NCBI GenBank assembly: GCA_002269645.1
Contig: NIVC01000028.1
Location: 310,001 to 374,000 of the forward strand
Reading direction: 5' to 3'
DNA: 64,000 nucleotides
DNA from: Macrostomum lignano
Taxonomy: Eukaryota
Position numbers and translations under genes: made by a program. A model generated the notes under the pieces. That model was not told where the DNA came from and did no database searches. It was given only the letters and a program-made list of their open reading frames with translations. Below, in pieces: positions 32,760 through 60,800 of this stretch (position 1 is the first letter of the stretch; the number at the start of each line of letters is the position of its first letter).

Positions 32760-35700
32760 ACACGTCAACTTTAGTATATACAGAGACGAGTGGAACTCCT
32801 CCTTCGGAGAAAGGGGAACAACTCCCATCACCGGAATTCCATTCCCTGAAATATCCATCAACTGAAATTCCCTGTATTGAACCCTATCTTCCAAATCGTC
32901 TCTAAATTCTTTACAAAACCTTTCAAAGACCATAGCTCAAAGACTCTCACGTCTCTCATATCTCATATCTCCTCTTCTCTTCGCTATTATCGTGACTCTC
33001 TTCTCTGTCCTCTCTCTCATCTTATCTCTACCCCTACTCCCTTATTTATCTCTTCTCCCTCGTCTTTCGTCTGTAACCTCTCCTGTCACTTGTCTCCTCT
33101 CTTCTCTCATATCTCTCCTCTTCACCTCTGTCTCCTGTCTCCTCTCTTCTCTCTTATCTCTCCCTCTTCTCTCCTCTCTCAAATCTCATCTCTACTAACT
33201 TATCTATCGTCTCTCCTAACCCTCTGTCTCTTCTCTTTTCTCTCCTATCTGATCTCATATCTCATATGCGCTCTCACACTCTACTTTCTTATCTCCCATT
33301 TTTCTTCCCTCCCTTCCACTATCCCCTGTCTCTTCTCTTCTCTCTTCTCTATCCTCTCCATCCTTTCTTCTCTCCTCTCCTTTCTCCTTTCATCTTCTCC
33401 CCTCTCTTCTCTAATCTCTAATCTCTTCTCTCCTATGTTCTCACTTATCTCTTTTCTCATCGCATCTCTCCTCTCTCCTCTCCTCACTACTTTCCTCTCT
33501 TAACTCTCTCTTCTCCTCTCGCTTCTCTCTCCTCTCTCTTCTCTCATCTCTACTACCTTGTTTATATCTTCTCCCGGGTCTTTCGTCTCTACTCTCTCCT
33601 GTCTCTTTTCTCCTCTCTTCTCTCTTCCCTCATCTCTCATCCCTCATCCCCTCATCTTACTCTTTCTTTCTCCTCTACTCTCCCCTCTCTTCTCCCCTCT
33701 GTACGCTCTTATCCCTCATCTTTTCTCTCTTTTATCATCTCTTTTGTCTCCCTGTGTTATCTCATATCTCCCCTCTCATCTCCTCTCTCATCTTCTCTTC
33801 TCTCTCCCTCTTTGTTCCCGCCTTACTTCCCTCTTCTCTCCCCCTTGTCATGTCTAATTTCTCCACTCATTTCTACTCTGTTTTCTATCATCTCATCTCT
33901 CTTCTCTTTTCATTATTTTCTTTACTCTCTTCTCTGACTGATTGAAGATGCCAAATCCATCAAGATCCTCTCCGCGAAGCAGAAATCCTGTCGGTGCAAC
34001 TGAAAACCATCGAAATCCTCTCCGTGAAACTGGACTGAGACTAACAAAACTAGACTCAACAAAACTGGACTCAATCGAAATTTTCTCCGTCAAAAAGAAT
34101 AAATTATCAGGATTCATTGGTTAGGGCTATTGTTAGGGTTAGGGTTCGAGCTACACACAGCTGCGTGTCCAAATAAAAATTGAACCAATTGAATCAATTG
34201 ATTGCGCAACCGATTTCTCAGTCAGTCAGTATCCGTCTCAGTTAAAGTTAACAAAAAGATTGCGCAATCTAAATCAACCCTCCAGTACACAGAGGCCGAC
34301 CCCTTTTCAATACGCAGTGGCAGTTAGAAATTGAATCCCCAACTGTTGGGGGGGGTCGGTCGAACGCCCATTGAACCAAAAAATGAGTACAATCTTTGCA
34401 GAAAGCTAAAAGTATGAAATAGTTTTTGTGATGCTGTGCTTTTAGTTTTTATATTTAAAACAAACAATTTATATCCTCGAACTCAGCGTTGCAAGATCTT
34501 TTCAGCAGTATAAGTCTCTTCTCTGGAAGTTTAAAACTCGAAGAGCAGTTAGCGTTTGAAACTGTCTGATTTATAGCATTGAAGTATCGAGTGTACGTTC
34601 ACTGCCTGCTTGCAAGTTGATGCATTGAATTTCAATGTCCAAAAAATACACATGGCTGCCCATTGAGAGGCAGGAAAACTCCTGCTGAATTATCTATACA
34701 GTCAGCCAGTGAGCCAGGGTCCAAGTGTACACACGCAGCCATGAGAACGCTCCCACCCCCCACTGGAGAGAAATACACTACAGAGATAAGAAAAAGTGGT
34801 GGCGCAATCACTAAAAATTGATGCATTTTCAGCTCCGAGCAGAAAAAAGGGACAAATAAGACTATCAAAATTATTAAAATAGCCTATAGCCGACCTCGGA
34901 TAATTTCCAATCTTCCCATTTAAGTTTCAACGCTGAGTTGCCACTATTCAAGGAGGAGTTGTCGAAATGACACACAGACAGACAAACAGACAGACTTAAG
35001 TGTACCCCAACCCACAGAACTCACGGCAGTGCCAGAGGCTCGTCGAAGTAAATCTTTCCGTCGTACCTAAATAGGCAGTGCGGAGTCTGAAGTCAGGGGG
35101 TATTCCATTGAGAGACCATGCTCTATGCTTAATTTCTTCCTTTTGTTTAAATTAACTTCAAAACAATTTTTTTAAATTTGTTTTAAAATTTGTTTTAAAA
35201 TTTGTTTTAAATTCTTTGTTTTGTTGTAAAAATCTGTAATATTACCAAAAAAGCACAAAAAATTTAAATGTTAAACTTAAACTCAACTATCACAGCAAAC
35301 TGCTTGCTGGTGTCTCACAGCTCGCAGGCAGCTGAACATTAATATTCAACTGGCAATCTGCAGTCAAACTGCACTGCAAACTCCCTCAATGCAGCTCAGT
35401 CAGTGTCTGCTGCCCGTTTAAACTACAAAAATGTAAAAATGCCCACTCAGAGCAACTGCAGTCAGCTGCTCAATATTAAATCATAAATTACAGCATAATG
35501 TTTATCAATGATAAATCAAAGTCAGAGAGACATTCTCAGTCGCCATGGAAACTCACCCACGCAGCAGCTCAGCCAATTCGCTCTTTTCCTTCTGTGTGGC
35601 CAAATCCAGCGCAGTCCTGCCGTATTTGTTCTTCAGGCTCCAATCCGCCCCTGAGTCCAGCAGAACCCGACCGAATGCGGCGGCGGTGGCGGAGGGCGTA

Positions 35701-38700
35701 TTGATGGCTGCCAGCATGAGGGGCGTGAATTCACACTGACCCGTGGCATTGGCGGAGGCTCCGGCAGCCAGCAGAGCGGAGGCTGCGGCAGAATTGCCAG
35801 TCCTGGCTGCATGGTGCAGGCAACTTTCAGCCAATATAGTCGCACAGGTGGGGTCACCTAGCTGCACCAGCTGCTCCCACTGAGCCTCATCACCACACGA
35901 GCTGTTCTCAGCTGCCCACATCAACGCGGTGCGACCCCGAATGTCAGGCAGGTCGCAGTTGCCGCGGGTCGCCGCTCGCCGCAGCCCCGCCAAGTCGCCC
36001 GCCTCGGCCAGCCGCTCCAGTTTCTGTCGAACCGCCTCCTCCTGCAAAGGCGAGCGGGAAATTTGAGCACAGCTGCTCAGCTGCAGCCGCATCGGCACTG
36101 CAGATGCCGCTCACCTGGTCTGTCAGGCCGGAGATCTTGTCACCTTTGCTCACAACCAGCCGCATCTCCCTGAAACAACAAAAATGAGCAGCGAATTTGC
36201 AATTTTCTCAAATCCGACAACTAAGATCGCAAAAAAATTAATTCCAAGATGTATGAATTAATTTTCATGATAAATTCAGTAGACAGAAATGTTTTGTTTG
36301 AAGAACGCCAAGTCAATGAATTATGGTAGTTTGAAATTAAGCTATATTTTAGCGGCAGCGCGCTCCTAGGGTCTTGTGCTCCTAAATGAAAAGATTCAAA
36401 GCTTAGGAAACAAAGGAGAGTACCGTATCGCGTCGCATAAACCATAGACTATTTTCGAAGTAAAAGTCTATACTTTGCAGTAGTCATAGCAATACGCAAC
36501 ACCCCCACCGATGCTTATACAGTGCAGTTCAAAGTTACGCCTTAAGCAATTCAGTAATAAGTCAATCGTTCCGGAGGTCGCCTGACTCGTGTGCTCCTAC
36601 GGAACTCGAGCACACCGTGTTCCTTGTGCCTAGGCGACTGCATTGCATGGCGCATTGGACTTGTGGTAGCACTGTCTTGGCACGTAGTTGCATCAGTATC
36701 ACGAGGGGTGATCCCAGACTGCTTCGAATCATCAATCGGTAGTTCCTCTGTACGAGCAGTAGCATCGGACTGGTGCACTAGTCGTCCTTCTGCGTCTCGG
36801 AAAGTATTTGTACCAACTGTAGACTTCAGCTCAGAGGGGACCCGTTGCTCCTTGTGCTCCACACGCACGAAAACAGGAACTGGCTCTTGAACCGGCCTCG
36901 TCCTCTCTGTACAAATGGCTGATAGACGTGTTCGGGGCGACTGCTGAAACACCAGAAGTGCCGGAATTGATCCATTGCAGTGAGGAGTCGTATTCTGAAA
37001 CAGGCAGAATCCTGCTCAATGCCTTTCCAGCTCAGAAAGATTGGCACCAGCGTTTAACTTTCTTAAATAAAACTTCAGTTCTTCAATGACTCTCTCCACC
37101 TGACCGTTGGATTGATGATGTCCTCGGGGAGTAAGTGTGTGGTCGATGTAGTTCTCTCGCAGGAAAGTAACGAAATCTTCTGCCACAAAAGTTCCACCAT
37201 TGTCCGAAACCAGATTTTTCGGCAATCCGGTATACTTGAACGTTTTTCTCAGCGCACTGATGACAATGGATGCTTTCATTGACGGCACGGACTGTACATC
37301 TACCCATTTTGAAAATGCGTCAACCAGGACAAGGAAGCGTTGACTTTTGAAAGTAGCGATGTCAACGTGAACTCTCTCGAAGAAACTTTTTGTCTCCGGC
37401 CATGACGACAGATTTGCATTGCTTCTTTTCCTAGCATGTAGCTGGCATTGAACACAACGTTGAACGAATGCATTGATTTGAGCATCTATGTCGGGCCACC
37501 AGAAGTACTGTCTGGATAGACGTAGCATCCTCACGATGCCGGGGTGGTCCTCGTGAAGCATCTGAAGAATTTCGCTTCTCAGGCTAGAGGGTGGGACGAT
37601 GCGCAATCCTTTGAAAATCAATCCGTTTTGGAGTGTGTATTCCAACTTATTGCGTGAATATGGCAGCATAGCTGGTGGTGGATAAGCAGGCCAGCCGTCT
37701 TGAATGTACTTCTTGAGCATGTCCAACTTGTAATCTTTAGTTCGCACGATCCTCTGCAGTAGCTGTTCGGGGTTTCCGAAACCCTCCAGTGCATTGATTT
37801 CTATGAGGTTGATCTTCTGATCCGCTGAGTCCGACTGCAATGGAAGTCTAGACAAAGTGTCTGCAGCGTACATCGTTTCACCCTTGACGTACTTCACATT
37901 GTAATCGTAAGCTCTTAACAGTAATGCCCATCGCTGAATCCTTGCTGAAACTCGCTCGGAGACCTTGTTCGGATTAAATATGTACTGAAGCGGTCGGTGA
38001 TCAGAAATGATGGTAAATTTTCGACCCGCGAGGTACTGATAAAAGTATCTGGTCCCTTCGACGATCGCTAACGCCTCCCGCTCAATGTTAGCGTAGTTGC
38101 TCTCCGCTGGAGTCAGGACTCGGCTGCCTAGCCAGACAACCTGTCGTTGCATTGGATCATGAGCTAGAACGTACCCGAGGCCATCCTTAGAGGCGTCACA
38201 AATCAAGTACAACGGTTTCGTAATGTCGTATGCGGTTATCACACCGCCTGCAATAATGCTCTTCAGCTTGTCGAATGCCGCAGACTGCTCTCCATGCCAA
38301 CTCCAGTGAACTCCTTTCTTCAGCAGCTGATATAACGGTCGTGCAATCATTGAAAAGTTTTTGCAGAAGACGCCATAGTGTCGGAAGGTGCACAGAGCGC
38401 TACGCAGTTGGTCTTTGTCTTTTGGATATGGTAACCTCTTCCACGCCTCCATTCGTGCTGGGTCGGGGTGCATGCCTCCATCGCGCAAAATGAAGCCAAG
38501 AAATCGAACTTCTCTACGACATTCTTGAGACTTTCTCTGGTTAATCTTGAACCCGCAGTTTGCCAAACGATCCTTGACTTGACGAACCAGCTGCATGTGT
38601 TTTTCGACTGAATCCTCAGGAGTCCCAATACCAGGGGGGTAATGATGTCATTCTGATATGAGGCTGTAAATGGTTTTTTATTATAGGCAGGGGGGTTGTG

Positions 38701-41700
38701 TGCACCCTGGCGCACTTTAAGCGACATAGGCACACAACCGGCGAGAGGCATTACTGCCCATTCCGCCGACTCCCCTGAGCTGGCATACAAGCGCGCGGAT
38801 ACGTACGCAGGCACACACTCACACAGGAGTGTACAGCGGCCCTAACTTTATATACATACTTAACAGGGGCGGTAAATGGTACATCCCGAAGAACTTCGTC
38901 CATGATTTCCTGAAATATTAGAGGCGCCACGGAAATCCCGAATTGTAGATATCTGAATGCAAAGAATCCCATGTGAGTAGAAATGCATGTGAGCTCTTGG
39001 CTCTCAGGGGATAGAGCCACCTGTAAGAAGGCCTGTTCTAAGTCTAGGACCGTATAGAATTTAGCGTTGGGAATCTTAGCCAGGATCTCCTCCATCTTCG
39101 GAAACCTGTACTTGTCCACGTCAATAAGACGATTGAGCGTCATAGAGTAGTCGCCACACAGTCGAATAGGTCTTACTGATCCCTCGGGCTTGACCATTGG
39201 GACTATTGGCGCTGCAACAGTAGGATTCTTGACTGAATAGATGATTCCTGAAGCAAGAAGTCTTCTTAGTTCGGTTTCTACCATAGACTTCATGGAGAAA
39301 GGAAGTGAGCGAGCAGGAAATCGCATGCCTTCCATACTCACACCCGAACGTAAGCGAAAGCTGGCAATGAAGTTTGAGTTTTGATCTCGGACGACTGGTA
39401 GGCACTTGTGTTCATTCGACACTCGAACCGCTTGATCCATTCGCACTAGGTCTAGGGACGGTATGAAGTTCATGCCCAGAATAGCTGTTGTATCTTGACC
39501 GACGTAGATGTTTTCTGAAGCAGACTTGCCACCAATAACCTGTAGCTTTGCCCCGTAGATGACAGAAGTGACCGTAGCTTGAAAACCTCCGTAAGATCTT
39601 AGTTTTTGGCTGACTGGCTGTAACTCTAAGCCTGAGCTCTTATCGATTTGATCCGGAACCACGGTTACTTGGCTGCCGGTGTCCACAAGCATGTTGACTT
39701 CGGTTTTTCCTAGACGACACCGAACAAACCACTGATCTGAGTAACCCGTTTTTGGCTGTCTAACCGCATGAATGAGTTCCAGATGGTAAGAGCTAGTGTT
39801 CCCTGGTGAAGGGCTGCAGCTTGGCATTCGTTGGATTGCGTTCATAGCCTTTGATCTGCACACGGTAGCTAGATGTTCTACCTTGCCGCATTTAGGGCAC
39901 TTGGCTTCTCGGAACCTGCATGCTGATCGTAGATGTCCCGATTTCCCACAGGTGTGACACTTAGCTGTTTTACCTTTAGGTTTGCCGCTCGACTGATTAT
40001 GCAGATGTCCCTGAGGTTGCTTGAATGAGACAGAGCGTTGAGCACTGCAGCTTCTTGGTCTCGAGAATGTCCCAGCATTCTGCACATTAGCGATAGTTTC
40101 CGGCTTGTCTGTAGCAGTTGCAATTGACTCGGTCATGAGTCCCTCTTGAATAGCATCATTAAGCTCAAGCGTGCCTTTGGATAGCAGTTTTTGCCGCAGA
40201 TTCTGACTACGAAGTCCGAAGATAAACTGAGACAGGATCAGGTCTTCGCGCAATTCACCATATTGGCACTTGTTCGCCTGTTGCTTGAGCCGTGCAACGA
40301 AATTTGTAATGCTCTCCGCGTCCTTTTGAACAGTAGAATGGAACACATGTCGCTCATAGTGAAGCAGAACTTTCGGTTTGAAGTGCTCGAGCAAAGTGTC
40401 CTGAATCGACTTGAACGTAACACCGGCCTTGGTGATGTCTTCTGGTTTTATCAGCTCCTCCACCAGATTGAATGCAGATTCACCGCAGGTAGCCAGTAGG
40501 ACTGCTTTAGCTTGCTCATTCTTCTCAGTTGCCTCCAGGTAGAACAGAAGTCGTTTGAAGTATTGTTCTATCTCTGGGTAAGAAAGTGGCATCTCACCAA
40601 GACGGTACTCCATTGACTGAGCCATTTTGAGGGCAGCAGGTGCGGAATTTTCCTCGACCCTCAGTTGCTTTTTATTCTCGTCGCCATGTTTTGTTTGAAT
40701 AACGCCAAGTCAATGAATTATGGTAGTTTGAAATTAAGCTATATTTTAGCGGCAGCGCGCTCCTAGGGTCTTGTGCTCCTAAATGAAAAGATTCGAAGCT
40801 TAGCAAACAAAGGAGAGTACCGTATCGCGTCGCATAAACCATAGACTATTTTCGAAGTAAAAGTCTATACTTTGCAGTAGTCATAGCAATACGCAACAAA
40901 AAATTCCTAATTATCTGAGCTGCTCGCAGATGGACTTTCTGTTGTGTTGCTACTCTATGCGTGTGCGTAATTGTGTGTACGTTCGATGTACATCTCTTAG
41001 CTATCGATCGCATTACAATGTATGATATATAAGTGAGAGCGCGGTGAGTTTGGGAGCTTGAGAGTTTCGCCTACAAACTTGCAGACTGGCTGGCTTATTC
41101 ATTATACAACAGTTTCCAAGAGGCCTGCAGCAGCTCTGCAACAATCAGCATTGGCGAGAGCGCATCCGACTTCTCACACGCAGCTAATTTTCCATTTTTG
41201 CAGCATGATTTTCCTTTCATCTCACAATGTCTCACAAAGCACTCACGCACAGCCTCCCAGTTCTCCATCTACACCTCAACCCACACACTCTCACTACATA
41301 CGAGGCCCTGCAGCTTCCATTCTCGACTGACATCAACCGGCACCCCATTGGCTGTTAGGCAGCCAGCCAATCACAGCTCTCGCCCATCAAGCAGTCAGCC
41401 AGAGACAAGCTCAGCTGACTGGCTCTGATTGGCTGGCCTGAGACTGCAGCTCTGGTCACCCCAGCCGAATGCTGCAAAACTTGATGGACACAGCAGCGAA
41501 CTGCTCACTCACCGCTCGATGTAGCTGGCCAGCTCTGAGTGGCCGCTGAGCCTCGCCAGGTCCGACGCCGTCCGACCCTCGCGATCCTTCAGTCCGAGCA
41601 GCTCCGACCTCTTCGAGTTTCCGTGCTTGAAGCATTCATTGAACCTGGGCTCTCTGAGCAGGTGCAGCAGGTGCTTGGCGCATTTCCAGCTTCCAGTCCG

Positions 41701-42140
41701 CGCCGCCTCCATCAGCGGAGTGGCGCCGTTTTCGTTCCGCAGCCACTTTGCATCGAACGACAGCAGCGTCAGCAGCCGCAGGTGGTCCCGTCGGGCTGCC
41801 AGGTGCGCAGCCGTGTCGCCGTTCGCGTCAGCCGCCTTGGGGTTCGCGCCCAGCTCAAGTAAGTACAAGATGCATTTTTCAGTGTGCACGGGAGTCTCAG
41901 GAGCGTCGGCCGCCAGCATGAGGACGGTCCGACGAGCTGCATCAGCGCTGGAGAGCAGCTGGCGCGTTGCCAGCCGCCGCACCTGGCCGAAGTCACCTCG
42001 GATGAGATAGTGGGTGAGAGTCTGGAAATTTAAACATGTGAGTGAATTCCTGCAACTGCAACTGCAACAGAAATAATTTAATCAGAAATAAATTAAAGTT
42101 TTATTACCTTATCCTCTAACTTAGAGGCTTCATTACCCAT
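25753..42140 (-). CDS. Ankyrin-repeat caspase (ANK-caspase), 8 exons, ~667 aa
   Basis: Exons 42108-42140, 41513-42021, 36115-36169, 35557-36041, 35025-35066, 26952-27011, 26366-26723, 25753-26214. All GT-AG, phases 0/2/0/2/2/2/0 join without a stop (2004 nt). The last acceptor is the least certain. N-terminal ANK repeats, C-terminal caspase. Confidence 0.8.
27030..27105. repeat. 13/15-bp minisatellite (GTAGCTGTGTGCT)n, short copy in the pre-caspase intron
   Basis: Same unit as 48523-48915 and 58817-59185; followed by GAAGGAACT exactly as at 59187-59195. Confidence 0.95.
27471..31389 (-). pseudogene. Gypsy gag-pol (two CCHC knuckles, protease, RT, RNase H, integrase) with frameshifts
   Basis: MSLIGSIGPF..WQQYQERL, CYGC..H..C, CYAC..GH..C, VDTGAS, ICADFK, FVDDLL, CDASPYGIGAV, HQGH..C..C, HIDYAGP, SDNG, SNGQAER. 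Spread over several frames. Confidence 0.93.
31700..33935. repeat. Two ~1-kb cryptically simple pyrimidine-rich (CT) tracts (31700-32660, 32940-33935)
   Basis: Almost purine-free + strand with no fixed period. Confidence 0.95.
32669..32760. repeat. Dispersed repeat head + (GACA)n, second copy at 34921-34996
   Basis: AAGTTTCAACGCTGAGTTGCCACTATTCAAGGAGGAG.TGTCGAAATGACA followed by CAGA repeats at both loci. Confidence 0.85.
36290..40898 (-). mobile_element. Ty3/Gypsy (Mag-like) LTR retrotransposon, full length, recent, in intron 2 of the ANK-caspase gene
   Basis: 212-bp TG..CA LTRs at 36290-36501 and 40687-40898 (3 mismatches). PBS TGGCGACGAG, PPT GGTGGGGG. gag-pro-RT ORF 38751-40625, RNase H-integrase ORF 37016-38596. 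Flanks AGAAA/AAAAA. Confidence 0.95.
38674..38867 (-). mobile_element. 194-bp insertion splitting the Gypsy RT just before the YxDD box
   Basis: Flanked by GGCTGTAAATGG (38662-38673) and GGCGGTAAATGG (38868-38879). A-rich 3' end on the minus strand. Removal joins VPFTA to SYQNDII. Confidence 0.7.
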
Positions 42141-44774: not shown

Positions 44775-45090
44775 GGCATCCCAGAATCTCTCAGCATCTC
44801 AGAATCTCTCAGCATCCCAGAGTCTCTCAGCATCTCAGAATCTCTCAGAATCTCAGAATCTCTCAGCATCTCAGAATCTCTCAGCATCTCAGAATCTCTC
44901 AGCATCTCAGAATCTCTCAGCATCCCAGAGTCTCTCAGCATCTCAGAATCTCTTAGCATCTCAGAATCTCTCAGCATCTCAGAATCTCTCAGCATCTCAG
45001 AATCTCTCAGCATCTCAGAATCTCTCAGCATCTCAGAATCTCTCAGCATCTCAGAGTCTCTCAGCATCTCAGAATCTCTCAGCATCTCAG
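44775..45090. repeat. 18-bp minisatellite (TCTCAGCATCTCAGAATC), ~17 copies
   Basis: Direct reading. Confidence 0.97.
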
Positions 45091-45761: not shown

Positions 45762-47505
45762 CTGCTGTGTGCTAACTCGGATGCAGCTCAAATTAAAGCC
45801 GAGCCCTTCTTCTGGTACCAATTAATTCTGCAATGAGAAAATGCTGAATCATGATCACATGCAAAGCACATGGATAGCAAAGGATTGCTAAACAGCACTA
45901 CGAGTATGGCGCGATTTTTGAACTTTCCGCTGCAATCAAAGTGCCTCACGTGAGCTCCGCAACCAACAGACAAAGTTTATCTTATCACAAAGCTTTCAAT
46001 GCTCGCACAGCTACTCAAAATAGTCAACAGCTAAACAGTTTATCATGCAGCTCTCCTGCCCAGTGTTTCTTCGACCCTTGACGTCAGTGTCAGCTGATTC
46101 TTGGGGTGTTCTGTTGTGCGTGGCGGTTCTTCTCAGGTGAGCTGTCCGCACCTCTCTTATCGGGAAGACCTGGCTCGATCTGAGCTCAGGTGCAGCCTCG
46201 GTGGCTCCACTTATCTTGTTTTTCTACAGTGTCTGCCTTGAGGTGCGACCTGTGGCACTTTTGCCCTTTTTAGTCTGTCCTTGCAGTGAATCTGAAACTC
46301 TTGTTTGGTCATCGTCTTCGCGAGACACCTCACTGGCACCCCAGTGTCCAGTTCGACCTCCGCCTGCCTCGTTCAGGTGACTCCGACAGGTGACATGCTC
46401 AGCCAGGCCTTTGAACCAAACACGAGCGTGCATTGTAGGGTGCCCAGGCTAAGCCTTGATCCTACGCCCGACCTGCTCATGGATCTGATGCTCCCCAAAC
46501 AGGCTCCCAGCCTCTGCAAGTCATGGATCGGACATTTCCCTGATAAACTATATAAGCAATGAAAACCAAGCACTCATGGCTGATGTGCAGAAACTCTCAG
46601 AAATTTTAACAGCTAAATAAGTTTTTTCTGATTAAAGCAAAACTCGAATTCACGTGCTTCAGCTTGGAGCAGTCGTGAGTTATCTGAGATTGATTCACCC
46701 TTATGCATTGGGCACACACAGAGAATAAAATGTTCCAAGTGTGCTGATTTTTTTATAGTATTTTTGAGGCAAACCAATGGATACAGAGAAAGTCAAATAG
46801 TGAACAAAAATTTCGACTTAACAAGAATCAAAATAAAATCTGGTACAACGAGTAGTTAAGCTTGTTTTCATTGGTACCGATATGAAGGCTCAGGGCTGTT
46901 GCGATTCTCCGTTGGTCTTTGGTAGAATTCACAGGAAAAGCACTTTATACTTTTTTTAAATTAGAAACTTTATCGGAGATTTCCTGTTTAAGTTTAATTT
47001 ACCGTGGGGAGCACGATAACAGTTCCAAATGCACTTAAACGGGAGCTGAACTTTGCTTTCCACCCCCACGCAGCACTTTAGGCAGGACCCATTCCCCTAA
47101 GGCATCTTTGGTCTCGCAGTCCTCCATGTTTCGCAGCCCAGTTTATGGTTTGCTAATCTGAACTGTGACAGGGTGCACTTTAATTCTGGGTTGGAAATTT
47201 CTACATGCACATGTAGCACATGCTTTTCCGTTGACCAGTACCATTTAAAACTAAAGTAAAAGTGACTCAGCTCTGAACAGCTCGGTAATCTTTGTCTACT
47301 CTTTGTCTACTCTTTGTCTACTCTTGCAATTTCTAATTTAAAACTCAGGCACTACCAGTACTTTGGCTATCTTGTAGAATTATCATGTCAAGGACGAAAA
47401 AAGTTTCTAAAAATTGCTCATACGAAGTTTACTGCAGACAGTTCCAAACTAAACAAAAGCTACGTAGAAATTTTCGCCATCGAAGAGCGCTCTGACCGGT
47501 GTCTG

Positions 47506-50500
47506 TCATTTCCGTGCACCAAAAAACGAGCTCAGGAATCGCGGTTTCAGCTTCCCACCCGCCAGGTACTCGTGCCCCATCAGCTCCAGTGCGGATCTTC
47601 TCTTCCTGCGGTCCTTGGCGGTGCAGCGGCTGTAGAAATCCCTCAGCTCTGCGGACCGGCCGTCCGGCAGGGCGGGGGCGCCCCTCCTGTCGATCAGCTG
47701 GGCCATTTCTAGCAGGCTTTTGGTGTTCGCGAACGGCCTTGAGCCGGACGCCATCTGGAAGACGGAGCAGCCGAACGCCCAGATGTCCGACTCTCTGCTG
47801 TACTGCACGCTGTCCGACTCTCCCGCTCCGAGCAGCTCTGGCGCCATGAAGTTCAGAGTGCCCTTTGGTTTCGAAGTGGAGGCTGAGATGTGGCTGACTG
47901 AATGCTCCAGCTTAATTGACAGGCCGAAGTCGATCAGCTTGATTCGCGTCTTGTCAGCACAAACAATTATGTTGGAGCAGTTGATGTCTCTGTGGATGAC
48001 GGGCGGCTGCTGGCTGTGCAGGTAGAGCAGCGCGCGGCAGATCTGCGAGCGGTCGGTCAGTGAGCAGTCATCATTCATGGGAACATGGAGCAGGAGCATC
48101 AAGGATGCACAATGCTCACCTGCTCGCTGAAGTCTCGGGTCGTCAGCTCGTCCAGCGGCTTGTTGTCGATAAACCTCTCCAAGCTTCGGCCGTCCAGCAG
48201 CTCCATGAACACAACGACTGTGGCGGGCTTCGGCTGAGCGATGTGCAAGAACCTGACGATGTTGGGATGCCGCAGTCGGCACAGGTTTCTCTCGCTCTCG
48301 ACAGCTCTGTGGATCTCTGAGCTTACATCGGTTTGGTCATCACCGAGCTGCACAGGCAGTCTGAGAGTCTTGGCAGCGCACGTGACGCCCGTGTCAGTTC
48401 GAACTTCGTGGACTTCGCCGAAGCCTCCGCGGCCGATGAGACGAACGGCGTCCCAGCGCTCCAGGAATGGGGGGCCTTCGGGTCTGAGGGGATGCGAATT
48501 GAGGCAATGAGGGATAATATGCATGCTGTAGCTGTGTGCTGTAGCTGTGTGCTGTAGCTGTGTGCTGTAGCTGTGTGCTGTAGCTGTGTGCTGTAGCTGT
48601 GTGCTGTAGCTGTGTGTGCTGTAGCTGTGTGTGCTGTAGCTGTGTGCTGTAGCTGTGTGTGCTGTAGTTGTGTGCTGTAGCTGTGTGCTGTAGCTGTGTG
48701 TGCTGTAGTTGTGTGCTGTAGCTGCGTGCTGTAGCTGTGTGTGTTGTAGCTGTGTGCTGTAGCTGTGTGTACAGTAGCTGTGTGTGCTGTAGCTGTGTTT
48801 GCTGTAGCTGTGTGTGCAGTAGCTGTGTGTGCTGTAGCTGTGTGTGCTGTAGCTGTGTGTGCTATAGCTGTGTGCTGTAGCTGCGTGCTTTTCTGTGTGT
48901 GGTGTAGCTGTCTGTACTGAATGAACTCACGGCAGTGCGAGAGGCTCGTCGAAATAAATTTTCCTGTCGTACCTGAAAAAGCAGTGCGGAGTCTGATTTC
49001 TGGCGGAATTCTGGTGAGAGCCCATCATGTTCTGTGCTAACTTACATTCTAACATTCTATTCTACCTAATTATTTTGCTTTATTTATATTTGTTACAAAA
49101 TAGATTTTTAAACATTTTCTGCAATTTAATATGGTTAAATTGAACTTAAATGTCACAGCAAAATGGTTGCTGGTGTCTCACAGCTCGCAGGCAGCTGAGC
49201 ATTAATATTCAACTGGCAATCTGCAGTCAACTGCACTGCAAACTCCTTCACTGCAGCTCAGTCAGTCCCTGCTGCCGATTTAAACTACAAAAATGTAAAA
49301 ATGCTCACTCAGAGCAACTACAGTCAGCTGCTCAATATTCAATCATAAATTACAGCATAATGTTTATCAATGATAAATCAAAGTCAGAGAGACATTCTCA
49401 GTCGCCATGGAAACTCACCCACGCAGCAGCTCAGCCAGTTCGCTTATTCTGTACTCTGTGGCCAAATCCAGCGCAGTCCTGCCGTCTTCGTCCTTCAGGC
49501 TCCAATCCGCCTCTGAGTCCAGCAGAACCCGACCGACTGCGGCGGCGGTGGCAGGGGGCGCAAAGGCTGCCAGGATGAGGGGCGTTGATTTAAAGTCATT
49601 CCTCGCATTGGCGGAGGCTCCGGAAGCCAGCAGAGCGGAGGCTGCGGCAGAATTGCCAGCGGTGGCTGCATGGTGCAGGCAACAAAAAGCCCATCTATTC
49701 GCACAGGTGGGGTCACCCAGCTGCAGCAGCTGCACCCACAGAGCCTCATCACTGCACGAGCTGTTCTGAGCTGCCCGCATCAACGCGGTGCGACCCCAGT
49801 CGTCAGGCAGGTCGCAGCTGCCGCGGGTCGCCGCTCGCCGCAGCCCCGCCAAGTCGCCCGCCTCGGCCAGCCGCTGCAGTTCCTGTCGATCCGCCTCCTC
49901 CTGCAAAGGCGAGCGGGAAATTTGAGCACAGCTGCTCAGCTGCAGCCGCATCGGCACCGCAGATGCCTCTCACCTGGGCTGTCAGGCCGGAGATCCTGCC
50001 ATCCACAACCAGCCGCATCTCACTGCAACAGTAAAAATGAGCAGCGAATTTGCAATTCTCCTAAATCCAATACCTACAATCGCAAAAATAATTATTTCAT
50101 GATAAGTTTTGTAAACAGAAATTCTAATTCTAATTCTAATTCTAATCTGAGCTGCTCGCAGATGGAGTTTCCGAGAGGACTGCAGCAGCTCTGCAACAAT
50201 CAGCATTGGCGAGAGCGCATCCGACTTCTCACATGCAGCTCATTTTCCATTTCTGCAGCATGAGTTTCCTTCCATCTCACAATGTCTCACAAAGCACTCA
50301 CGCACAGCCTCCCAGTTCTCCATCTGCAGCTCCACCACACACTCTCACTGCACACCGAGGCCCTTCAGCTTCCATTCTCGACTGAGATCAACCGGCACCC
50401 CATTGGCTGTGAGGCAGCCAGCCAATCACAGCTCTCGCCCATCAAGCAGTCAGCCAGAGACAAGCTCAGCTGACTGGCTCTGATTGGCTGGCCTGAGACT

Positions 50501-51348
50501 GCAGCTCTGGTCACCCCAGCCGAATGCTGCAAAACTTGATGGACACAGCAGCGAACTGCTCACTCACCGCTCGATGTAGTTGGCCAGCTCTGAGTGGCCG
50601 CTGAGCCTCGCCAGGTCCGACGCCGTCCGACCCTCGCGATCCTTCAGTCCGAGCAGGTGCGACCTCTTTGAGCTTCCGTGCTCCTCGCACTCATTGAACC
50701 TTCCCTGCCTGAGCAGGTGCAGCAGGTGCTTGGCGCATTTCCAGCTTCCAGTCCGCGCCGCCTCCATCAGCGGAGTGGCGCCGTTGTCGTTCCGCAGCCA
50801 CTTCGCATCGAACGACAGCAGCGTCAGCAGCCGCAAGTGGTCCCGTCGGGCTGCCAGGTGCGCAGCCGTGTCGCCGTTCGCGTCAGCCGCCTTGGGGTTC
50901 GCACCCAGCTCAAATAAGTACAAGATGCACTTTTCAGTGTGCACGGGAGTCTCAGGAGCGTCGGCCACCTGCATGAGGACGGTCCGACGAGCTGCATCAG
51001 CGCTGGTGACCAGCTGGCGCGTTGCCAGCCGCCGCACCTCGCCGAATTCACCTCGGATGACGTCGTGGGCGAGAGTCTGGAGATCGGCTGGTGAGTCTCC
51101 GACGCTTGGCCGGTTGCTGGGGTCCGGCTGAGTGAGTTCCTGCAACTGCAATTGAGGCACCCAAGCTGCCCATTCAAACATGTGAGTGAGTCCCTGCAAC
51201 TGCAATTGAGGCACCCAAGCTGCACATTCAAACATGTGAGTGAGTCCATGCAACTGCAATTGAGCCTATAAATATTCTGTCTCAGTTTTCTCACTTTAAC
51301 TTTACTTACTATTTCGTCAATAGATGGTGATCTCCGTCGCTCTGCCAT
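47506..51348 (-). CDS. Ankyrin-repeat Ser/Thr kinase (MAP3K/STE11-like domain), copy A, 7 exons, ~673 aa
   Basis: Exons 51310-51348, 50568-51076, 49974-50022, 49419-49900, 48931-48972, 48120-48483, 47506-48042; phases join (2022 nt). Kinase motifs GRGGFGEV, AAK, HPNIVRF, HRDINCSN, DFG, GTLNFMAPE, SDIWAFG. An extra 3' exon cannot be excluded. Confidence 0.87.
48523..48915. repeat. (GTAGCTGTGTGCT)n 13/15-bp minisatellite in the pre-kinase intron
   Basis: Direct reading. Confidence 0.98.
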
Positions 51349-52127
51349 GGCTGCAAGCTCAGTCCGTCAGTCGCAGGTGTCTCAGCTCAGCCCGAGAGTG
51401 GTGCAGGGCAGCGGCCGCCTCTGCAGCAGATTTTATTGGCCCTGGAGCAGCTGCAGCGAATTCCTTCTCACCCTGCCTTTCTGCCTCTCCTATTGGCTCT
51501 GAGGGAACAGCAGAACTGCTGCAATGTCGGTGCGTGGCTACTTGAAGCAGTCAGTGTGTGACTGCGGAATTTCTTGCGAAGTTGGTGCAATTAACATGAG
51601 TAGAATGCATGAGGGGGCTTCTGGGACAAAATTTTTCACCTCCTCCATAATCCCATTAAATCCATCCATATTATCCCCGACAGAATCAGAGCAGGTGTCC
51701 ACTGATACCTGTTATGCTCACTGACACAGACATAATCCACTGACATCCACCCATAGCATCTTCGAAACAATCAGAAAATAATCTGCATTCTTCTCCCCAC
51801 ATTCAATCCGCAACGTGCTACCAGATCCCTAAGACTTTAAATCCCCTAACCCAGGGTCCTCACCCTTTAAAAAAAATTAAATTCTCAATAAAAATGTTTC
51901 CAGTTGTCTCTCCAGGTTCTTATTATACTCAGCCTAATCCATTGTACAAACCCAAGTACCGATGCAAACTTGAATGCAGCGAGTACATGAGAAAATATTG
52001 GCCCGGCGTTAATATCAATGTCTCTAATATTAATATTATATTTTTGCGCTCCCTCAGCAAATAGCAGTTACCCCACCCCTTTTCGAAATGCAGCTGTTGC
52101 GCTTGGCTGCGAATAATCTTTCCCGAC

Positions 52128-52628
52128 TCAAGCGCCTCTCTCAACCCCCAGCTCTTTCAACAGTCTTCCCAATTCATTGTTTGGAGCACACAAAATAAAC
52201 CCTGCTCCCGTGCGTCCGCCCTCTCTCCCTGTGCACCCGCCCTCTCTCCCCGTGCACCCACCCTCGGCGCCGACCCCCAACCCCAACTTTGTCTTACCAA
52301 AAATAACCGCCTTGACTAATTTCCTAGCAATCGACTCACGAAATCCGCTTGAAATCCCCATATTGTCGAGTCTCCTGAGGATTTCTTTGTCCCAGCGATT
52401 CTTCTCCTCAGGAAAATCTCTATATTTAACATCGTGCCACATGCAGACAGAGTCTAGCTCGTTCACAGGCTCATGCCCAGGATTTGGATTATTGTTTTTA
52501 TCTAACTGTATTTCAAATGGATTCAAAGGCCCACAATATTTGTACCCGGGAAGTGTCCAGCCTTTGTTTGGATGAGGAAGCTTTTCTATCAGTCCATGTG
52601 AATCTAACTTACCACCAGAGTGTTGCAT
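52128..52628 (-). CDS. Parvovirus VP1-type phospholipase A2 domain protein
   Basis: WTLPGYKYCGPLN (Ca-binding loop) and NELDSVCMWHDVKY (catalytic HD..Y); ATG at 52628. Confidence 0.85.
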   Translation of the reverse strand: MQHSGGKLDSHGLIEKLPHPNKGWTLPGYKYCGPLNPFEIQLDKNNNPNPGHEPVNELDSVCMWHDVKYRDFPEEKNRWDKEILRRLDNMGISSGFRESIARKLVKAVIFGKTKLGLGVGAEGGCTGREGGCTGREGGRTGAGFILCAPNNELGRLLKELGVERGA

Positions 52629-52658
52629 TATTTTATTTAAAATTTTCTTTTTAAAAAA

Positions 52659-53468
52659 ATGACAGATCAGAAACTTAAAAAACTCTACTACAGCGACAAA
52701 GGATTCTTTGTAGGCAAAAATGCCGTTAGTAAACTCATGGAGCTGAGTAAGGAACCAAAAGCTACAGTAGAAAAATGGCTCTCTAAGCAGGCTGTCTACC
52801 AAGTCTATTTCCCACCAGTAAAATTTGAAAGGCCCCATTTCAGTATTTATAAACCTAATGAGGCGCACCAAGCAGATCTTCTGTTTCTCCCCAATGACTC
52901 AGGCTACAAGTATGCTCTTACAATTATAGACATTGCTTCCAGATATAAGGAAGCTCGCCCACTCAAGACGAAGAAGTCAGAGGTCGTTGCCAGCGCACTG
53001 CAAGAGATCTATGAAACCTCTCCTCTAACCTATCCAGAAATCTTTATGACGGACCCTGGTAAGGAATTCATGGGTGCAGTGAAATCCCTTATGGAAAAGA
53101 AAAACACAGAGATTCGCTATGGCAGAAAAAACTTGCACAGAGACCAGGCTTTTGTGGAAAGATTCAATCTAACTCTAGCCAAGAGGCTATTCAATAAGCA
53201 GACAGCTGAGGAGCTGAAACTAAAAAGTGGTCAGTACTATTCAAAATATTTACTATTTAAACACACTAATATTAAATTCATGCTCACAATCATCACGATC
53301 GGGGCAGCCCTCTCCTGCCTTAATTGTTATACCTTTGTCTCTTGCAATCTTTTGCAATTCCAGCTGGTGGGCTCTATCATTCCCAGCTTTAACAGCAGTT
53401 GCTACACCTCCAGCTACACCACCTGCGGCACTTACAGCGCCTGCAATGATCGGAATAAGAGCTGCTAA
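52659..53468 (+). CDS. Polinton-type retroviral-like (rve) integrase, C-terminus probably truncated by deletion
   Basis: HQADLL, LTIIDIASRY, MTDPGKEF, QAFVERFNLTL: intact D-D-E. Similarity appears to fade after about residue 190. Confidence 0.88.
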   Translation: MTDQKLKKLYYSDKGFFVGKNAVSKLMELSKEPKATVEKWLSKQAVYQVYFPPVKFERPHFSIYKPNEAHQADLLFLPNDSGYKYALTIIDIASRYKEARPLKTKKSEVVASALQEIYETSPLTYPEIFMTDPGKEFMGAVKSLMEKKNTEIRYGRKNLHRDQAFVERFNLTLAKRLFNKQTAEELKLKSGQYYSKYLLFKHTNIKFMLTIITIGAALSCLNCYTFVSCNLLQFQLVGSIIPSFNSSCYTSSYTTCGTYSACNDRNKSC

Positions 53469-53540
53469 TGGTAGGATTCCTCCTGACTTTTCATCTGTGA
53501 TGCTGTGTCTTTGCTCATTACACTGAACTATTTGCTGCAC
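53253..53540 (-). CDS. Remnant of a small Gly/Ala-rich hydrophobic Polinton protein
   Basis: GGILPLAALIPIIAGAVSAAGGVAGGVATAVKAG..HQLELQK; frame stays open upstream to ~53610 without a Met. Confidence 0.55.
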   Translation of the reverse strand: MQQIVQCNEQRHSITDEKSGGILPLAALIPIIAGAVSAAGGVAGGVATAVKAGNDRAHQLELQKIARDKGITIKAGEGCPDRDDCEHEFNISVFK

Positions 53541-56002: not shown

Positions 56003-56100
56003 ATGAGCTGTGATGGAGAATGGAGATCATGAGCTGTGATGGAGAATGGGGATCATGAGCTGTGATGGAGAATGGGGATCATGAGCTACGATGGATCATG
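56003..56100. repeat. 26-bp tandem repeat (ATGAGCTGTGATGGAGAATGGGGATC), ~3.5 copies
   Basis: Period 26 at 56003, 56029, 56055, 56081. Confidence 0.93.
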
Positions 56101-57100: not shown

Positions 57101-57341
57101 GGGTCGCCATCATAAGCTCCAAAAATCACATCGTCGAAAAGTTTAGCAACCACAATCTCTAGCTCTAACCCTAACCTAACCCTAAGGCACTAACCCTAAC
57201 CCTTAACCTAACCCTCAACCGTAACCCTACTTTTCGACGATGTGACTTTTCGAGCTTGTGATTTTTCGAGCTTATGACTTTTCGGGCTTGTGATGGTGGA
57301 TGCTTTTCGACGATGTGATTTTTCGAGCTTGTGATGTGCCC
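57101..57341. mobile_element. 241-bp MITE with 9-bp TSD (Mutator-type) and internal telomere-like (CCCTAA)n
   Basis: TSD CCCAGTTTA at 57092-57100 and 57342-57350. ~40-bp imperfect TIRs GGG...AAAAATCACATCGTCGAAAAG. Empty site in the paralogous segment at ~47137-47146. Confidence 0.88.
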
Positions 57342-57493
57342 CCCAGTTTATGGTTTGCTAATCTGAACTGTGACAGGGTGCACTTTAATTCTGGGTTGGA
57401 AATTTCTACATGCACATGTAGCACATGCTTTTCGGTTGACCAGTACCATTTAAAACTAAAGTAAAAGTGACTCAGATCTGAACAGCTCGGTAA

Positions 57494-57630
57494 TCTTTGT
57501 CTACTCTTTGTCTACTCTTTGTCTAATATTTGTCTACTCTTTGTCTACTATTTGTCTACTCTTTGTCTACTCTTTGTCTACTCTATGTCTATGCTTTGTC
57601 TACTCTTTGTCCACTCTTTGTCTACTCTTG
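57494..57630. repeat. 11-bp (TCTTTGTCTAC)n array, ~12 copies (about 3 copies in the paralogue at ~47290-47325)
   Basis: Direct reading. Confidence 0.92.
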
Positions 57631-57809
57631 CAATTTCTAATTTAAAACTCAGGCACTACCAGTACTTTGGCTATCTTGTAAAATTATCATGTCAGGGACG
57701 AAAAAAGTTTCTAAAAATTGCTCAAACGAAGTTTACTGCAGACAGTTCCAAACTAAACAAAAGCTACGTAGAAATTTTCGCCATCGAAGAGCGCTCTGAC
57801 CGGTGTCTG

Positions 57810-60800
57810 TCATTTCCGTGCACCAAAAAACGAGCTCAGGAATCGCGGTTTCAGCTTCCCACCCGCCAGGTACTCGTGCCCCATCAGCTCCAGTGCGGAT
57901 CTTCTCTTCCTGCGGTCCTTGGCGGTGCAGCGGCTGTAGAAATCCCTCAGCTCTGCGGACCGGCCGTCCGGCAGGGCGGGGGCGCCCCGCTTGTCGATCA
58001 GCTGGGCCATTTCTAGCAGGCGTTTGGTGTTCGCGAACGGCCTTGAGCCGGACGCCATCTGGAAGACGGAGCAGCCGAACGCCCAGATGTCCGACTCTCT
58101 GCTGTACTGCACGCTGTCCGACTCTCCCGCTCCGAGCAGCTCTGGCGCCATGAAGTTCAGAGTGCCTTTGGGTGACTGAGTGGAGGCTGACACGTGGCTG
58201 ACTGACTGCTCCAGCTTGATTGACAGGCCGAAGTCGATCAGCTTGATTCGCGTCTTGTCAGCACAAACAATTATGTTGGAGCAGTTGATGTCTCTGTGGA
58301 TGACGGGCGGCTGCTGGCTGTGCAGGTAGAGCAGCGCGCGGCAGATCTGCGAGCGGTCGGTCAGTGAGCAGTCATCATTCATGGGAACATGGAGCAGGAG
58401 CATCAAGGATGCACAATGCTCACCTGCTCGCTGAATTCTCGGGTCGTCAGCTCGTCCAGCGGCTTGTTGTCGATAAACCTCTCCAAGCTTCGGCCGTCCA
58501 GCAGCTCCATGAACACAACGACTGTGGCGGGCTTCGGCTGAGCGATGTGCAAGAACCTGACGATGTTGGGATGCCGCAGTCGGCACAGGTTTCTCTCGCT
58601 CTCGACAGCTCTGTGGATCTCTGAGCTTACATCGGTTTGGTCATCACCGAGCTGCACAGGCAGTCTGAGAGTCTTGGCAGCGCACGTGACGCCTGTGTCA
58701 GTTCGAACTTCGTGGACTTCGCCGAAGCCTCCGCGGCCGATGAGACGAACGGCGTCCCAGCGCTTCAGGAATGGGGGTCTGAGGGGATGCGAATTGAGGC
58801 AATGAGGGATAATATGCATGCTGTAGCTGTGTGTGCTGTAGCTGTGTGCTGTAGCTGTGTGCTGTAGCTGTGTGTGCTGTAGCTGTGTGCTGTAGCTGTG
58901 TGTGCAGTAGCTGTGTGCTGTAGCTGTGTGCTGTAGCTGTGTGTGCTGTAGCTGTGTGCTGTAACTGTGTGTGCTGTAGCTGTGTGCTGTAACTGTGTGT
59001 GCTGTAGCTTTGTGTGCTGTAGCTGTGTGTGCTGTAGCTGGGTGTGCTGTAGCTGTGTGCTGTAGCTGTGTGTTGTAGCTGTGTGCTGTAGCTGTGTGTG
59101 CTGTAGCTGTGTGCTGTAGCTGGGTGTGCTGTAGCTGTGTGTGCTGTAGCTGTGTGCTGTAGCTGTGTGTGCTGTAACTGTGTGCTGAAGGAACTCACGG
59201 CAGTGCCAGAGGCTCGTCGAAGTAAATCTTGCCGTCGTACCTAAATGGGCAGTGCGAAATCTGAAGTCAGTGTGAATTCTTTTGACAGCCCATGCTCTGT
59301 GCTTCATTCTTTCCATTTCTTTAAATTAACCATATAATAATATTTTTAATAGTTTTTATTCTATTGTAAAACGCTGTAATATTACCAGAAAAGCACAAAG
59401 TAATTCAGATGGCAAAATGCTTGCTGGTGTCTCACAGCTCGCAGGCAGCTGAACATTAACATTCAACTGGCAATCTGCAGTCAAACTGCACTGCAAACTC
59501 CCTCAATGCAGCTCAGTCAGTGTCTGCTGCCCATTTAAACTAAAAAAATGTAAAAATGCCCACTCAGAGCAACTGCAGTCAGCTGCTCAATATTCAATCA
59601 TAAATTACAGCATAATGTTTATCAATGATAAATCAAAGTCAGAGAGACATTTTCAGTCGCCATGGAAACTCACCCACGCAGCAGCTCAGCCAGTTCGCTC
59701 TTTCCCTCCTCTGTGGCCAAATCCAGCGCAGTCCTGCCGTCTCTGTTCTTCGGTCTCCAATCCGCCCCTGAGTCCAGCAGACCCCGACCGACTGCGGCGG
59801 CAGTGACGGGTGGCGCATGGGCTGCCACCATGAGGGGCGTGGATTTAGACAGACCTGCCCCTGCATTGGCGGAGGCTCCGGCAGCCAGCAGAGCGGAGGC
59901 TGCGGCAGAATTGCCAGCCCCGGCTGCACGGTGCAGGCAACTTTCACCAATTAAATTCGCACAGGTGGGGTCACCCAGCTGCACCAGCTGCTCCCACAGA
60001 GCCTCATTACCGCACGATCTGTTCTGAGCTGCCCACATCAACGCGGTGAAACCAAAACTGTCAGGCAGGTCGCAGCTGCCGCGGGTCGCCGCTCGCCGCA
60101 GCCCCGCCAAGTCGCCCGCCTCGGCCAGCCGCCGCAGTTCCTGTCGATCCCGCTCCTCCTGCAAAGGCGAGCGGGAAATTTGAGCACAGCTGCTCAGCTG
60201 CAGCCGCATCGGCACCGCAGATGCCGCTCACCTGGTCTTTCAGGCCGAAGACCATGCCATATTTATCCATATCCAGCCGCATCTCCCTGCAACAGAAAAA
60301 TTGAGAACTGAATTTGCAATTTTCTCAAATCCGCAACTACAATCACCAAAAGAAATTTATTTATATTTTGACAGAATCTTAGTAAACAAAAATCCCCAAT
60401 TATCTGAGCAGCTCGCAGATGAAGTTTCCAAGAGGACTGCAGCAGCTCTGCAACATCAGCATTGGCGAGAGCGCATCCGACTTCTCACACGCAGCTCATT
60501 TTCCATTTCTGCAGCATGAGTTTCCTTCCATCTCACAATGTCTCACAAAGCACTCACGCACAGCCTCCCAGTTCTCCATCTGCAGCTCAACCCACACACT
60601 CTCACTGCACACCGAGGCCCTACAGCTTCCATTCTCGACTGAGATCAACCGGCACCCCATTGGCTGTGAGGCAGCCAGCCAATCACAGCTCTCGCCCATC
60701 AAGCAGAGTCAGACAGAGACAAGCTCAGCTGACTGGCTCTGATTGGCTGGCCTGAGAGTGCAGCTCTGGCCACCCCAGCCGAATGCTGCAAAACTTGATG

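Follow-up and report, generated by a model that had tools for sequence, protein, structure and literature searches.

Why should neighboring genes differ at some 40 of 160 residues in one exon when the intron beside that exon is nearly the same in all of them? The question is raised by a 64,000-nucleotide stretch of the genome of the flatworm Macrostomum lignano (GenBank assembly GCA_002269645.1, contig NIVC01000028.1, forward-strand positions 310,001 to 374,000; hereafter the window, in whose coordinates positions are given). This eukaryotic DNA, rich in minisatellites and transposons, carries three tandem paralogues, all on the minus strand, each of which encodes two ankyrin (ANK) domains, ANK1 and ANK2, followed by an effector: a kinase for copies 2 and 3 and, in the predicted copy 1 product, a caspase. 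We consider it likely that duplication and sequence exchange keep the scaffold and introns of this ANK-caspase/ANK-kinase sensor family alike while selection diversifies the face of ANK2. A preliminary description of the locus had set about 40 differing residues between copies 1 and 3 against about 5 differing bases in some 210 bp of adjoining intron, over an interval that runs from the 3′ end of the copy 1 ANK2 exon (35557) to the 5′ end of the copy 3 ANK2 exon (60158). The peptide strings it quoted are correct, and both counts were borne out on computation: 39 of 160 residues, and 5 mismatches in 211 aligned nt plus 3 gap columns (35340-35550 versus 59457-59670). The other two pairs differ at 39 (copies 1 and 2) and 36 (copies 2 and 3) of the 160 residues.

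A self-comparison of the window finds the shared unit three times, at 35261-36244 plus 41111-42026 (copy 1), 47290-51589 (copy 2), and 57594-61850 (copy 3). The exons of copies 2 and 3 were defined by reading them and aligning them against each other, which gave the order short first exon, ANK1 exon (572 nt), linker exon (49 to 55 nt), ANK2 exon (482 to 485 nt), 42-nt exon, and two kinase exons (Table 1). The 42-nt exon, which encodes YDGKIYFDEPLALP, was revealed by tblastn with family members; a kinase exon start at 58820, directly after a minisatellite, was dropped in favor of this exon and an acceptor at 58778. A short YDGKIYFDEP segment joins ANK2 to the effector. In copy 1, a first exon of its own precedes the ANK1, linker, ANK2, and 42-nt exons that it shares with the other copies, and three caspase-side exons follow (27011 to 25753); no kinase was found downstream of this copy, where tblastn revealed the caspase instead. 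The three models are intact open reading frames (ORFs) of 694 (copy 2), 694 (copy 3), and 655 (copy 1) amino acids, with GT-AG introns throughout. At the boundary of intron 1 and exon 2 in copies 3 and 2 (61400-61540 and 51140-51280), two to three repeats of a 57-bp unit (CTCAATTGCAGTTGCAGGAACTCACTCACATG...) multiply an in-frame TTGCAG acceptor, and the true 5′ end of exon 2 is therefore ambiguous. Copy 1 is interrupted by a 4.6-kb insertion flanked by 213-bp direct repeats, the long terminal repeats (LTRs) of a retrotransposon, and since these are 98.6% alike the insertion is recent. Its 8-kb intron before the caspase exons contains another LTR retroelement as well as low-complexity, CT-rich sequence. 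Both elements lie in the gene's orientation, and ORF pieces of both are fused into ANK and caspase exons in a chimeric UniRef prediction (P0042) that also contains the copy 1 linker and ANK2 verbatim. An assembly artifact, or the collapse of alleles, can be ruled out, because copy 2 and the copy 1 caspase exactly match independent public predictions (identity to P0004 over 368 plus 274 residues and 100% identity to P0082, respectively) and because the copies, which lie 10 kb apart, are separated by distinct intergenic DNA.

All 51 best database matches of these genes are uncharacterized M. lignano proteins (27 with a kinase, 11 with a caspase, 12 with ANK only, and 1 without a recorded Pfam domain). 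The window genes are members of an M. lignano-specific family of about 50 predicted protein clusters, of which our literature searches found no description. Many of the database models are fragments; the ANK pro-domain and the caspase stand on one polypeptide in the paralogues P0023, P0027, and P0036 to P0039. Eight further M. lignano loci (L001 to L008) supplied 12 more ANK2 exons with flanking introns, for a total of 15 paralogous exons with DNA.

The differences within ANK2 are concentrated on its predicted contact face. The preliminary description had likened the variable sites to the surface that is randomized in designed ankyrin repeat proteins (DARPins). We fixed the test set before looking: positions 2, 3, 5, 13, 14, and 33, those randomized in DARPin libraries, of each of the four ANK2 repeats, or 24 alignment columns. 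Both between copies 1 and 3 and between copies 1 and 2, 18 of 23 DARPin positions differ versus 21 of 137 others (Fisher P = 3.6e-9); between copies 2 and 3 the figures are 13 of 23 and 23 of 137 (P = 1e-4). Across the 15 exons, all intact, entropy is 1.91 bits at DARPin columns versus 0.52 elsewhere (Mann-Whitney P = 8e-10), the number of different residues per column is 5.6 versus 2.3, and 18 of the 24 columns that vary most belong to the DARPin set; most other variable columns correspond to position 10 of helix 1 or to residues next to the turns. With database proteins included, there are 33 distinct modules with the same pattern of variability and with combinations that are almost never repeated; in the window, each of the three copies is unique within the hypervariable patches. 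The claim of an invariant scaffold was too strong, since about 15% of the non-DARPin positions differ between copies as well.

This arrangement is also visible in the predicted structure. The ankyrin fold is supported by Pfam Ank matches and, in the AlphaFold model of copy 2 (P0004), by paired helices with a predicted local distance difference test score (pLDDT) above 90 over residues 20 to 370. In every repeat the variable residues occupy the beta-turn and the stretch where helix 1 ends, that is, just before and at the end of each first helix, again at pLDDT above 90, and they cluster on the surface rather than scatter. The best structural matches in the Protein Data Bank (PDB) are rigid DARPin-DARPin fusions, which fit two ankyrin domains connected by a helical linker. 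The kinase half of the model is poor (pLDDT 30 to 60), and we draw no interdomain conclusion from it. ANK1 serves as an internal control: the same repeat positions are conserved there (0.34 bit), so that the variability is not a general property of ankyrin turns. The two domains of one protein are about 30% identical, and the repeats inside ANK2 are visibly dissimilar. Through its conserved surface, ANK1 probably binds either an unchanging partner or the effector of the same protein.

Is this variability selected? By Nei-Gojobori (NG86) counts between the window copies, dN/dS is 1.9 to 2.3 in the ANK2 exon (three of three pairs) and above 1.8 in the linker, versus 0.57 to 0.77 in ANK1 and 0.6 in the kinase. 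In every window pair, nonsynonymous differences in ANK2 exceed both synonymous differences (P = 0.019 to 0.033) and intron differences (P = 1e-5 to 6e-9), and dN at the 24 contact codons reaches 0.58 to 0.74 versus an intron distance of 0.02 to 0.045. Because counting methods mishandle codons with two or three changes, we used a maximum-likelihood fixed-sites codon model (F3x4, shared kappa and branch lengths) in which the contact class receives its own rate and its own omega, so that omega is judged against synonymous change in the same codons. For the window copies, omega at the contact codons is 6.06, with a 3.1-fold rate and a likelihood ratio statistic against omega = 1 of 7.8 (P = 0.005); for the 15 paralogues, omega is 2.05, with a 3.3-fold rate and a statistic of 9.9 (P = 0.0016). 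The remaining codons give 1.9 and 1.0, respectively. Diversifying selection, as proposed earlier, is thus supported. Family-wide pairwise NG86 and parsimony ratios are modest (1.3 to 1.6) because multistep codon paths inflate synonymous counts.

The near-identity of the introns, for its part, proved accurate next to the ANK exons: the copies differ at 1 to 2 positions in intron 3 (73 nt), 6 to 12 in the first 260 nt of intron 4, and 7 to 15 in the first 400 nt of intron 2. It breaks down in the last 75 nt of intron 2, where the copies are 20 to 32% different, and in intron 4 past about 300 nt, where copy 1 cannot be aligned with copies 2 and 3. Along the unit, the outlier shifts from copy 1 (ANK1 and intron 2) to copy 2 (intron 4), and the likeness of the introns stems partly from sequence exchange inside the array. 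Between distant loci, intron 3 and the ANK1 exon are conserved and intron 4 is not (median distance, 0.23); the near-identity of this intron is therefore a local, array-level effect. The likeness between the caspase gene and the kinase genes starts inside exon 2 and fades past the ANK2 exon, and it follows from this confinement to the module edges that the ANK module has been exchanged or homogenized as a cassette between effector classes. The first 400 nt of intron 2 (60423-60826, 50166-50567, and 41111-41512 in copies 3, 2, and 1), 96 to 98% alike between copies, contain three CCAAT-box motifs (CCAATCAG, ATTGG, and CCAATGG) and may be an internal promoter or enhancer; an Rfam search of the window returned no match that would place a known RNA in the conserved introns.

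Taken together, we propose that recent duplication and exchange, by gene conversion or unequal crossing-over, would homogenize the scaffold codons and adjoining introns, even across effector types, while diversifying selection for new binding specificities would drive and keep replacements at the ANK2 contact positions. Such selection would shield new concave-face residues from homogenization, and some ANK2 patches are of older or imported ancestry.

Several points weigh against this proposal. A family-wide parsimony count on a neighbor-joining tree gives a ratio of only 1.37 (P = 0.054) with the contact codons' own synonymous reference, and of 3.6 against that of the scaffold. The contact class holds only about 13 synonymous sites, and both recombination among paralogues and frequent multinucleotide changes can inflate omega tests. 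Synonymous change is itself raised, about 3-fold at the contact codons and 5.7-fold in a loop of ANK1, so that recent selection does not account for all of the patch diversity, some of which is old or imported. As regards the proteins, the splicing of the copy 1 ANK exons to its caspase across the 8-kb retroelement-filled intron is predicted from compatible phases and GT-AG sites, yet public annotation either splits this gene (P0082, caspase alone) or makes it chimeric (P0042). Finally, the proteins have no oligomerization (nucleoside triphosphatase [NTPase]) domain that could explain activation.

Some of these points are also what would be expected if concerted evolution alone were at work, with old paralogues whose scaffold and introns are homogenized by short conversion tracts and whose patches are simply spots that the tracts failed to cover, without positive selection. 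The switching of the outlier copy and the roughly 3-fold rate multiplier at contact codons fit such a history, as does the ANK1 loop RQxxFNECxxHGNSKRS (60900-60990 in copy 3, 50640-50730 in copy 2), which is 5.7-fold accelerated in both classes of change (omega, 0.61) in an exon that is otherwise 95% identical. This loop, one of the variable blocks that had been noted in the ANK1 and linker exons and that a comparison of the copies confirms, indicates different or older ancestry and not positive selection. Likewise, the repeat-D patch of ANK2 carries five synonymous differences between copies 2 and 3, which indicates mosaic or older ancestry, not selection alone. Patches B and C of the same pair, however, are rich in replacements and have no synonymous differences, nor do the conserved codons that separate them, and omega within the contact codons exceeds 1 in both data sets. 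Moreover, an escape from homogenization at identical spots of 3 to 6 codons in 33 modules needs selection against homogenization, which is diversifying selection. Gene conversion, earlier named as what might by itself explain the introns, thus contributes but is not the sole cause, because it would erase the patches too and because omega is measured against synonymous change in the same codons. We regard concerted evolution without positive selection as unlikely.

Less probable still is that the patches are written by a targeted mutational or templated process, such as microconversion from donor cassettes or error-prone repair, with selection in a minor role. The differences are clustered, with two or three changed bases per codon, the synonymous rate is raised about 3-fold, and patch strings recur in otherwise different paralogues ("DKFSKTALRLAT" in two copies of locus L002, "NIW", and "DKWG[RQ]T"), all of which such a process would produce. 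Nonetheless, in the window copies codon positions 1 and 2 are twice as variable (0.49 and 0.44) as position 3 (0.23), and the combination of patches is unique in nearly every module. A mechanism like that of diversity-generating retroelements was considered and rejected, as self-comparison shows no template repeat or extra copy of the exon in the window and the only reverse transcriptases (RTs) belong to the ordinary LTR elements in the copy 1 introns. A dedicated mutational mechanism is not needed. Relaxed constraint, under which surface positions of redundant copies or pseudogenes drift freely, would suit the two retroelement insertions in copy 1, the omega near 1 of noncontact codons, and the fragmentary database models, but it is highly improbable, and pseudogene decay can be set aside, given that 15 of 15 ANK2 and 16 of 16 ANK1 exons are open, that the window genes have full ORFs, canonical splice sites, intact catalytic motifs, and indels only in multiples of three, that the homologous ANK1 positions are conserved, and that drift yields an omega of at most 1 and neither the 5-fold concentration on 24 positions fixed in advance nor the 15- to 30-fold excess over introns.

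What, then, might a diversified ANK2 face be for? The effectors to which it is coupled retain their catalytic motifs. The kinase, of the STE/MAP3K-like type, matches Pfam PF00069 (1.1e-33), retains GRGGFG, AAK, HRDIN, DFG, and APE in the ORFs of copies 2 and 3, and finds its closest solved structures in MAP3K2 (4.9e-28) and MAP3K5/ASK1 (2e-26). The caspase matches Pfam PF00656 (Peptidase_C14) on two copy 1 exons (5e-19 and 5e-18), and both catalytic motifs, HG (MAHGSHD) and QACRG (IQACRGS), are intact in the 655-residue model. Caspase-class members begin MG(S/N), a myristoylation-type N terminus (MGS in P0023 and P0036), and kinase-class members begin with MA and then basic residues. The activation segment of the kinase has a small variable patch of its own, EQSVSHVSASTQSPKGT at 58170-58225 in copy 3 versus EHSVSHISASTSKPKGT at 47866-47921 in copy 2, which accounts for 5 of the 8 amino acid differences between the two kinase domains and is also variable elsewhere in the family. 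In P0024, P0025, P0031, and P0046, the same MAP3K-like kinase stands behind a different, internally repetitive ankyrin array (GDTAVHLAAEHQGIESLE...), so that the kinase, like the ANK module, is reused in several architectures.

The family looks like one of undescribed intracellular receptors, given a recognition domain joined to a death- or stress-signaling effector, the lack of a signal peptide, and the analogies discussed below. The ANK2 face may bind a variety of ligands, which most plausibly come from pathogens or other non-self sources; their binding would then activate the caspase, leading to cell death, or the MAP3K-like kinase, leading to stress signaling. We infer a role in immune or non-self sensing from such likenesses, and the earlier comparison with immune receptors is likewise an analogy. 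Speculatively, and with rather more doubt than confidence, these proteins could represent an unrecognized type of animal non-self receptor: a germline-encoded natural DARPin library whose two-domain ANK sensor, lacking an NTPase switch, would be swapped as a cassette between alternative effectors, namely, the caspase, the MAP3K-like kinase, or none (possible decoys). The swap would perhaps take place at a (CACACAGCTACAG)n minisatellite that lies exactly at the junction of module and effector in every locus examined. In the window it occupies the intron between the 42-nt exon and the first effector exon (a remnant in copy 1), and its motif is found on the gene strand downstream of ANK2 in eight of eight other M. 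lignano loci; effectors may be swapped by recombination at this minisatellite.

The nearest described system is that of the fungal NOD-like receptors (NLRs; Podospora nwd/het; Dyrka et al. 2014, PMC4986451), in which the ANK, TPR, and WD repeats are under positive selection at their concave face, evolve in concert, and occur with many types of effector. As in these receptors, one type of hypervariable, positively selected sensor is paired in M. lignano with different effector domains, and the rest of the sequence evolves in concert. Unlike them, the host is an animal, and the central NACHT or NB-ARC NTPase is missing: none was found among the Pfam domains of the window proteins or the precomputed domains of the 51 family members. 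Fungal repeats within a gene are more than 85% alike and are shuffled within that gene, whereas the repeats of one M. lignano protein are dissimilar, falling short of the internal conservation (at least 85% identity within the gene) that marks the fungal type, and homogenization acts between paralogous genes, introns included. The family is one of diversified repeat sensors but does not belong to the NLRs.

Plant resistance gene clusters offer a second parallel. Solvent-exposed residues of the leucine-rich repeats (LRRs) in clusters such as Cf-4/9 and RPP5 have Ka/Ks above 1, tandem paralogues exchange sequence, and the immune role is proven. The M. lignano array is likewise one of tandem mosaic paralogues with a conserved framework and flanks and with replacements at predicted ligand-contact residues; it differs in having ANK repeats rather than LRRs, other effectors, and no nucleotide-binding switch, and in that its immune role is inferred. 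With DARPins the parallel is positional, the library-randomized positions being the natural hypervariable positions of ANK2. DARPins are synthetic consensus repeats without effectors, unlike the M. lignano proteins, in which variation extends to position 10 of helix 1 and positions 1, 4, 15, and 16 and turn lengths differ by 1 to 5 residues. An N-terminal ankyrin sensor also precedes a kinase fold in RNase L and in ankyrin-kinases such as TNNI3K, ILK, and RIPK4/ANKK1, and the innate immune sensor RNase L can be aligned with the whole length of the copy 2 model. RNase L and the ankyrin-kinases are conserved single-copy genes with invariant ligand sites, and RNase L combines a pseudokinase with a nuclease; the M. 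lignano kinase, in contrast, is closest to MAP3K2 and MAP3K5.

On the caspase side, caspases with an N-terminal ankyrin pro-domain are known from flatworms. First seen in Schistosoma, they have been reported as single genes confined to parasitic species, M. lignano being credited only with a caspase that has a "kinase-like pro-domain" (PMC11463336). We find at least 11 ANK-caspase models in this free-living worm, and the module, unlike that of the reported ANK-caspases, is hypervariable and also occurs on kinases; neither the hypervariability nor the module shared by kinases and caspases is described in that report. A word-limited search with the caspase returned no flatworm relative outside Macrostomum, the nearest outside matches being caspase-3/8-like proteins at 32 to 36% identity.

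Table 1. Positions in the window of the gene parts, introns, and repeats of the three ANK-caspase/ANK-kinase paralogues
Feature	Coordinates	Strand	Basis or remark
Copy 3 ANK2 exon, 485 nt, four repeats plus N-cap, hypervariable	59674-60158	-	Splice sites, ORF, Pfam Ank_2 5e-20
Copy 2 ANK2 exon, 482 nt	49419-49900	-	Alignment; match to UniRef P0004
Copy 1 ANK2 exon, 485 nt	35557-36041	-	String verbatim in chimeric prediction P0042
Copy 3 ANK1 exon, conserved except loop LRKWRLNAYGKHENSKRSRLLRL	60827-61398	-	Pfam Ank_2 1.5e-11 (ANK1 exon)
Copy 2 ANK1 exon	50568-51139	-	Alignment of copies
Copy 1 ANK1 exon; likeness to copies 2 and 3 begins at 42026	41513-42021	-	Self-comparison
Copy 1 class-specific first exon MGNEASKLEDK, myristoylation-type N terminus	42108-42140	-	Gene model
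Linker exon	Copy 3, 60232-60286 (55 nt); copy 2, 49974-50022; copy 1, 36115-36169	-	Variable, dN/dS >1.8
42-nt exon YDGKIYFDEPLALP	Copy 3, 59199-59240; copy 2, 48931-48972; copy 1, 35025-35066	-	tblastn, frame, splice sites; matches P0001, P0005
Copy 3 MAP3K-like kinase exons	58424-58778; 57810-58346	-	Pfam PF00069, PDB matches, intact ORF
Copy 2 kinase exons	48120-48483; 47506-48042	-	Alignment, ORF
Copy 1 caspase-side exons	26952-27011; 26366-26723; 25753-26178	-	tblastn to P0027, Pfam PF00656, 100% match to P0082
Intron 3, 73 nt	Copy 3, 60159-60231; copy 2, 49901-49973; copy 1, 36042-36114	-	1-2 differences between copies
Intron 4, first 260 nt (conserved stretch of the preliminary description)	Copy 3, 59414-59673	-	6-12 differences between copies
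(CACACAGCTACAG)n minisatellite, intron between 42-nt exon and first effector exon	Copy 3, 58787-59190; copy 2, 48516-48920; copy 1 remnant, 27027-27103	-	
LTR retrotransposon (gag, protease, RT, RNase H, integrase), intron 2 of copy 1	36289-40898	-	213-bp LTRs 98.6% alike
Second LTR-retrotransposon gag-pol remnant, copy 1 intron between 42-nt exon and caspase exons	27471-31416	-	Domain search

Elsewhere in the window, an ORF between copies 2 and 3 (52128-52871, minus strand) encodes a phospholipase A2-like domain of the parvovirus capsid type (PF08398, 1.2e-12) and is overlapped on the opposite strand by an ORF with an integrase core domain (52659-53468, plus strand; PF00665); the pair is probably a mobile-element remnant. 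A second cluster of mobile-element ORFs (6873-10799, minus strand) comprises an RT-like ORF, a mariner-type transposase (PF01359), and an ORF whose N terminus resembles a THAP zinc finger by eye. At 13630-18811 (plus strand) lie kinesin-motor-like exons whose introns are filled with 35-nt, 14-nt, and 9- to 19-nt minisatellites that create long spurious ORFs.

Two corrections to existing records follow from this work: ANK-caspases, reported as confined to parasitic flatworms, are present in free-living M. lignano, and public M. lignano models split or chimerize these genes (P0082 and P0042). More broadly, evolution appears to have reached the very positions that DARPin engineers chose, and the family in this regard offers natural data on the diversification of ankyrin specificity. 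Innate immunity is poorly understood in flatworms, and we know of no diversified receptor repertoire described from this group. If the receptor reading is true, some 50 genes in which an ankyrin sensor is coupled directly to a caspase or a MAP3K-like kinase would form a compact system leading from recognition to response without NLR-type switches. M. lignano is transparent and amenable to transgenesis and RNA interference, and its tractability makes the receptor idea testable.

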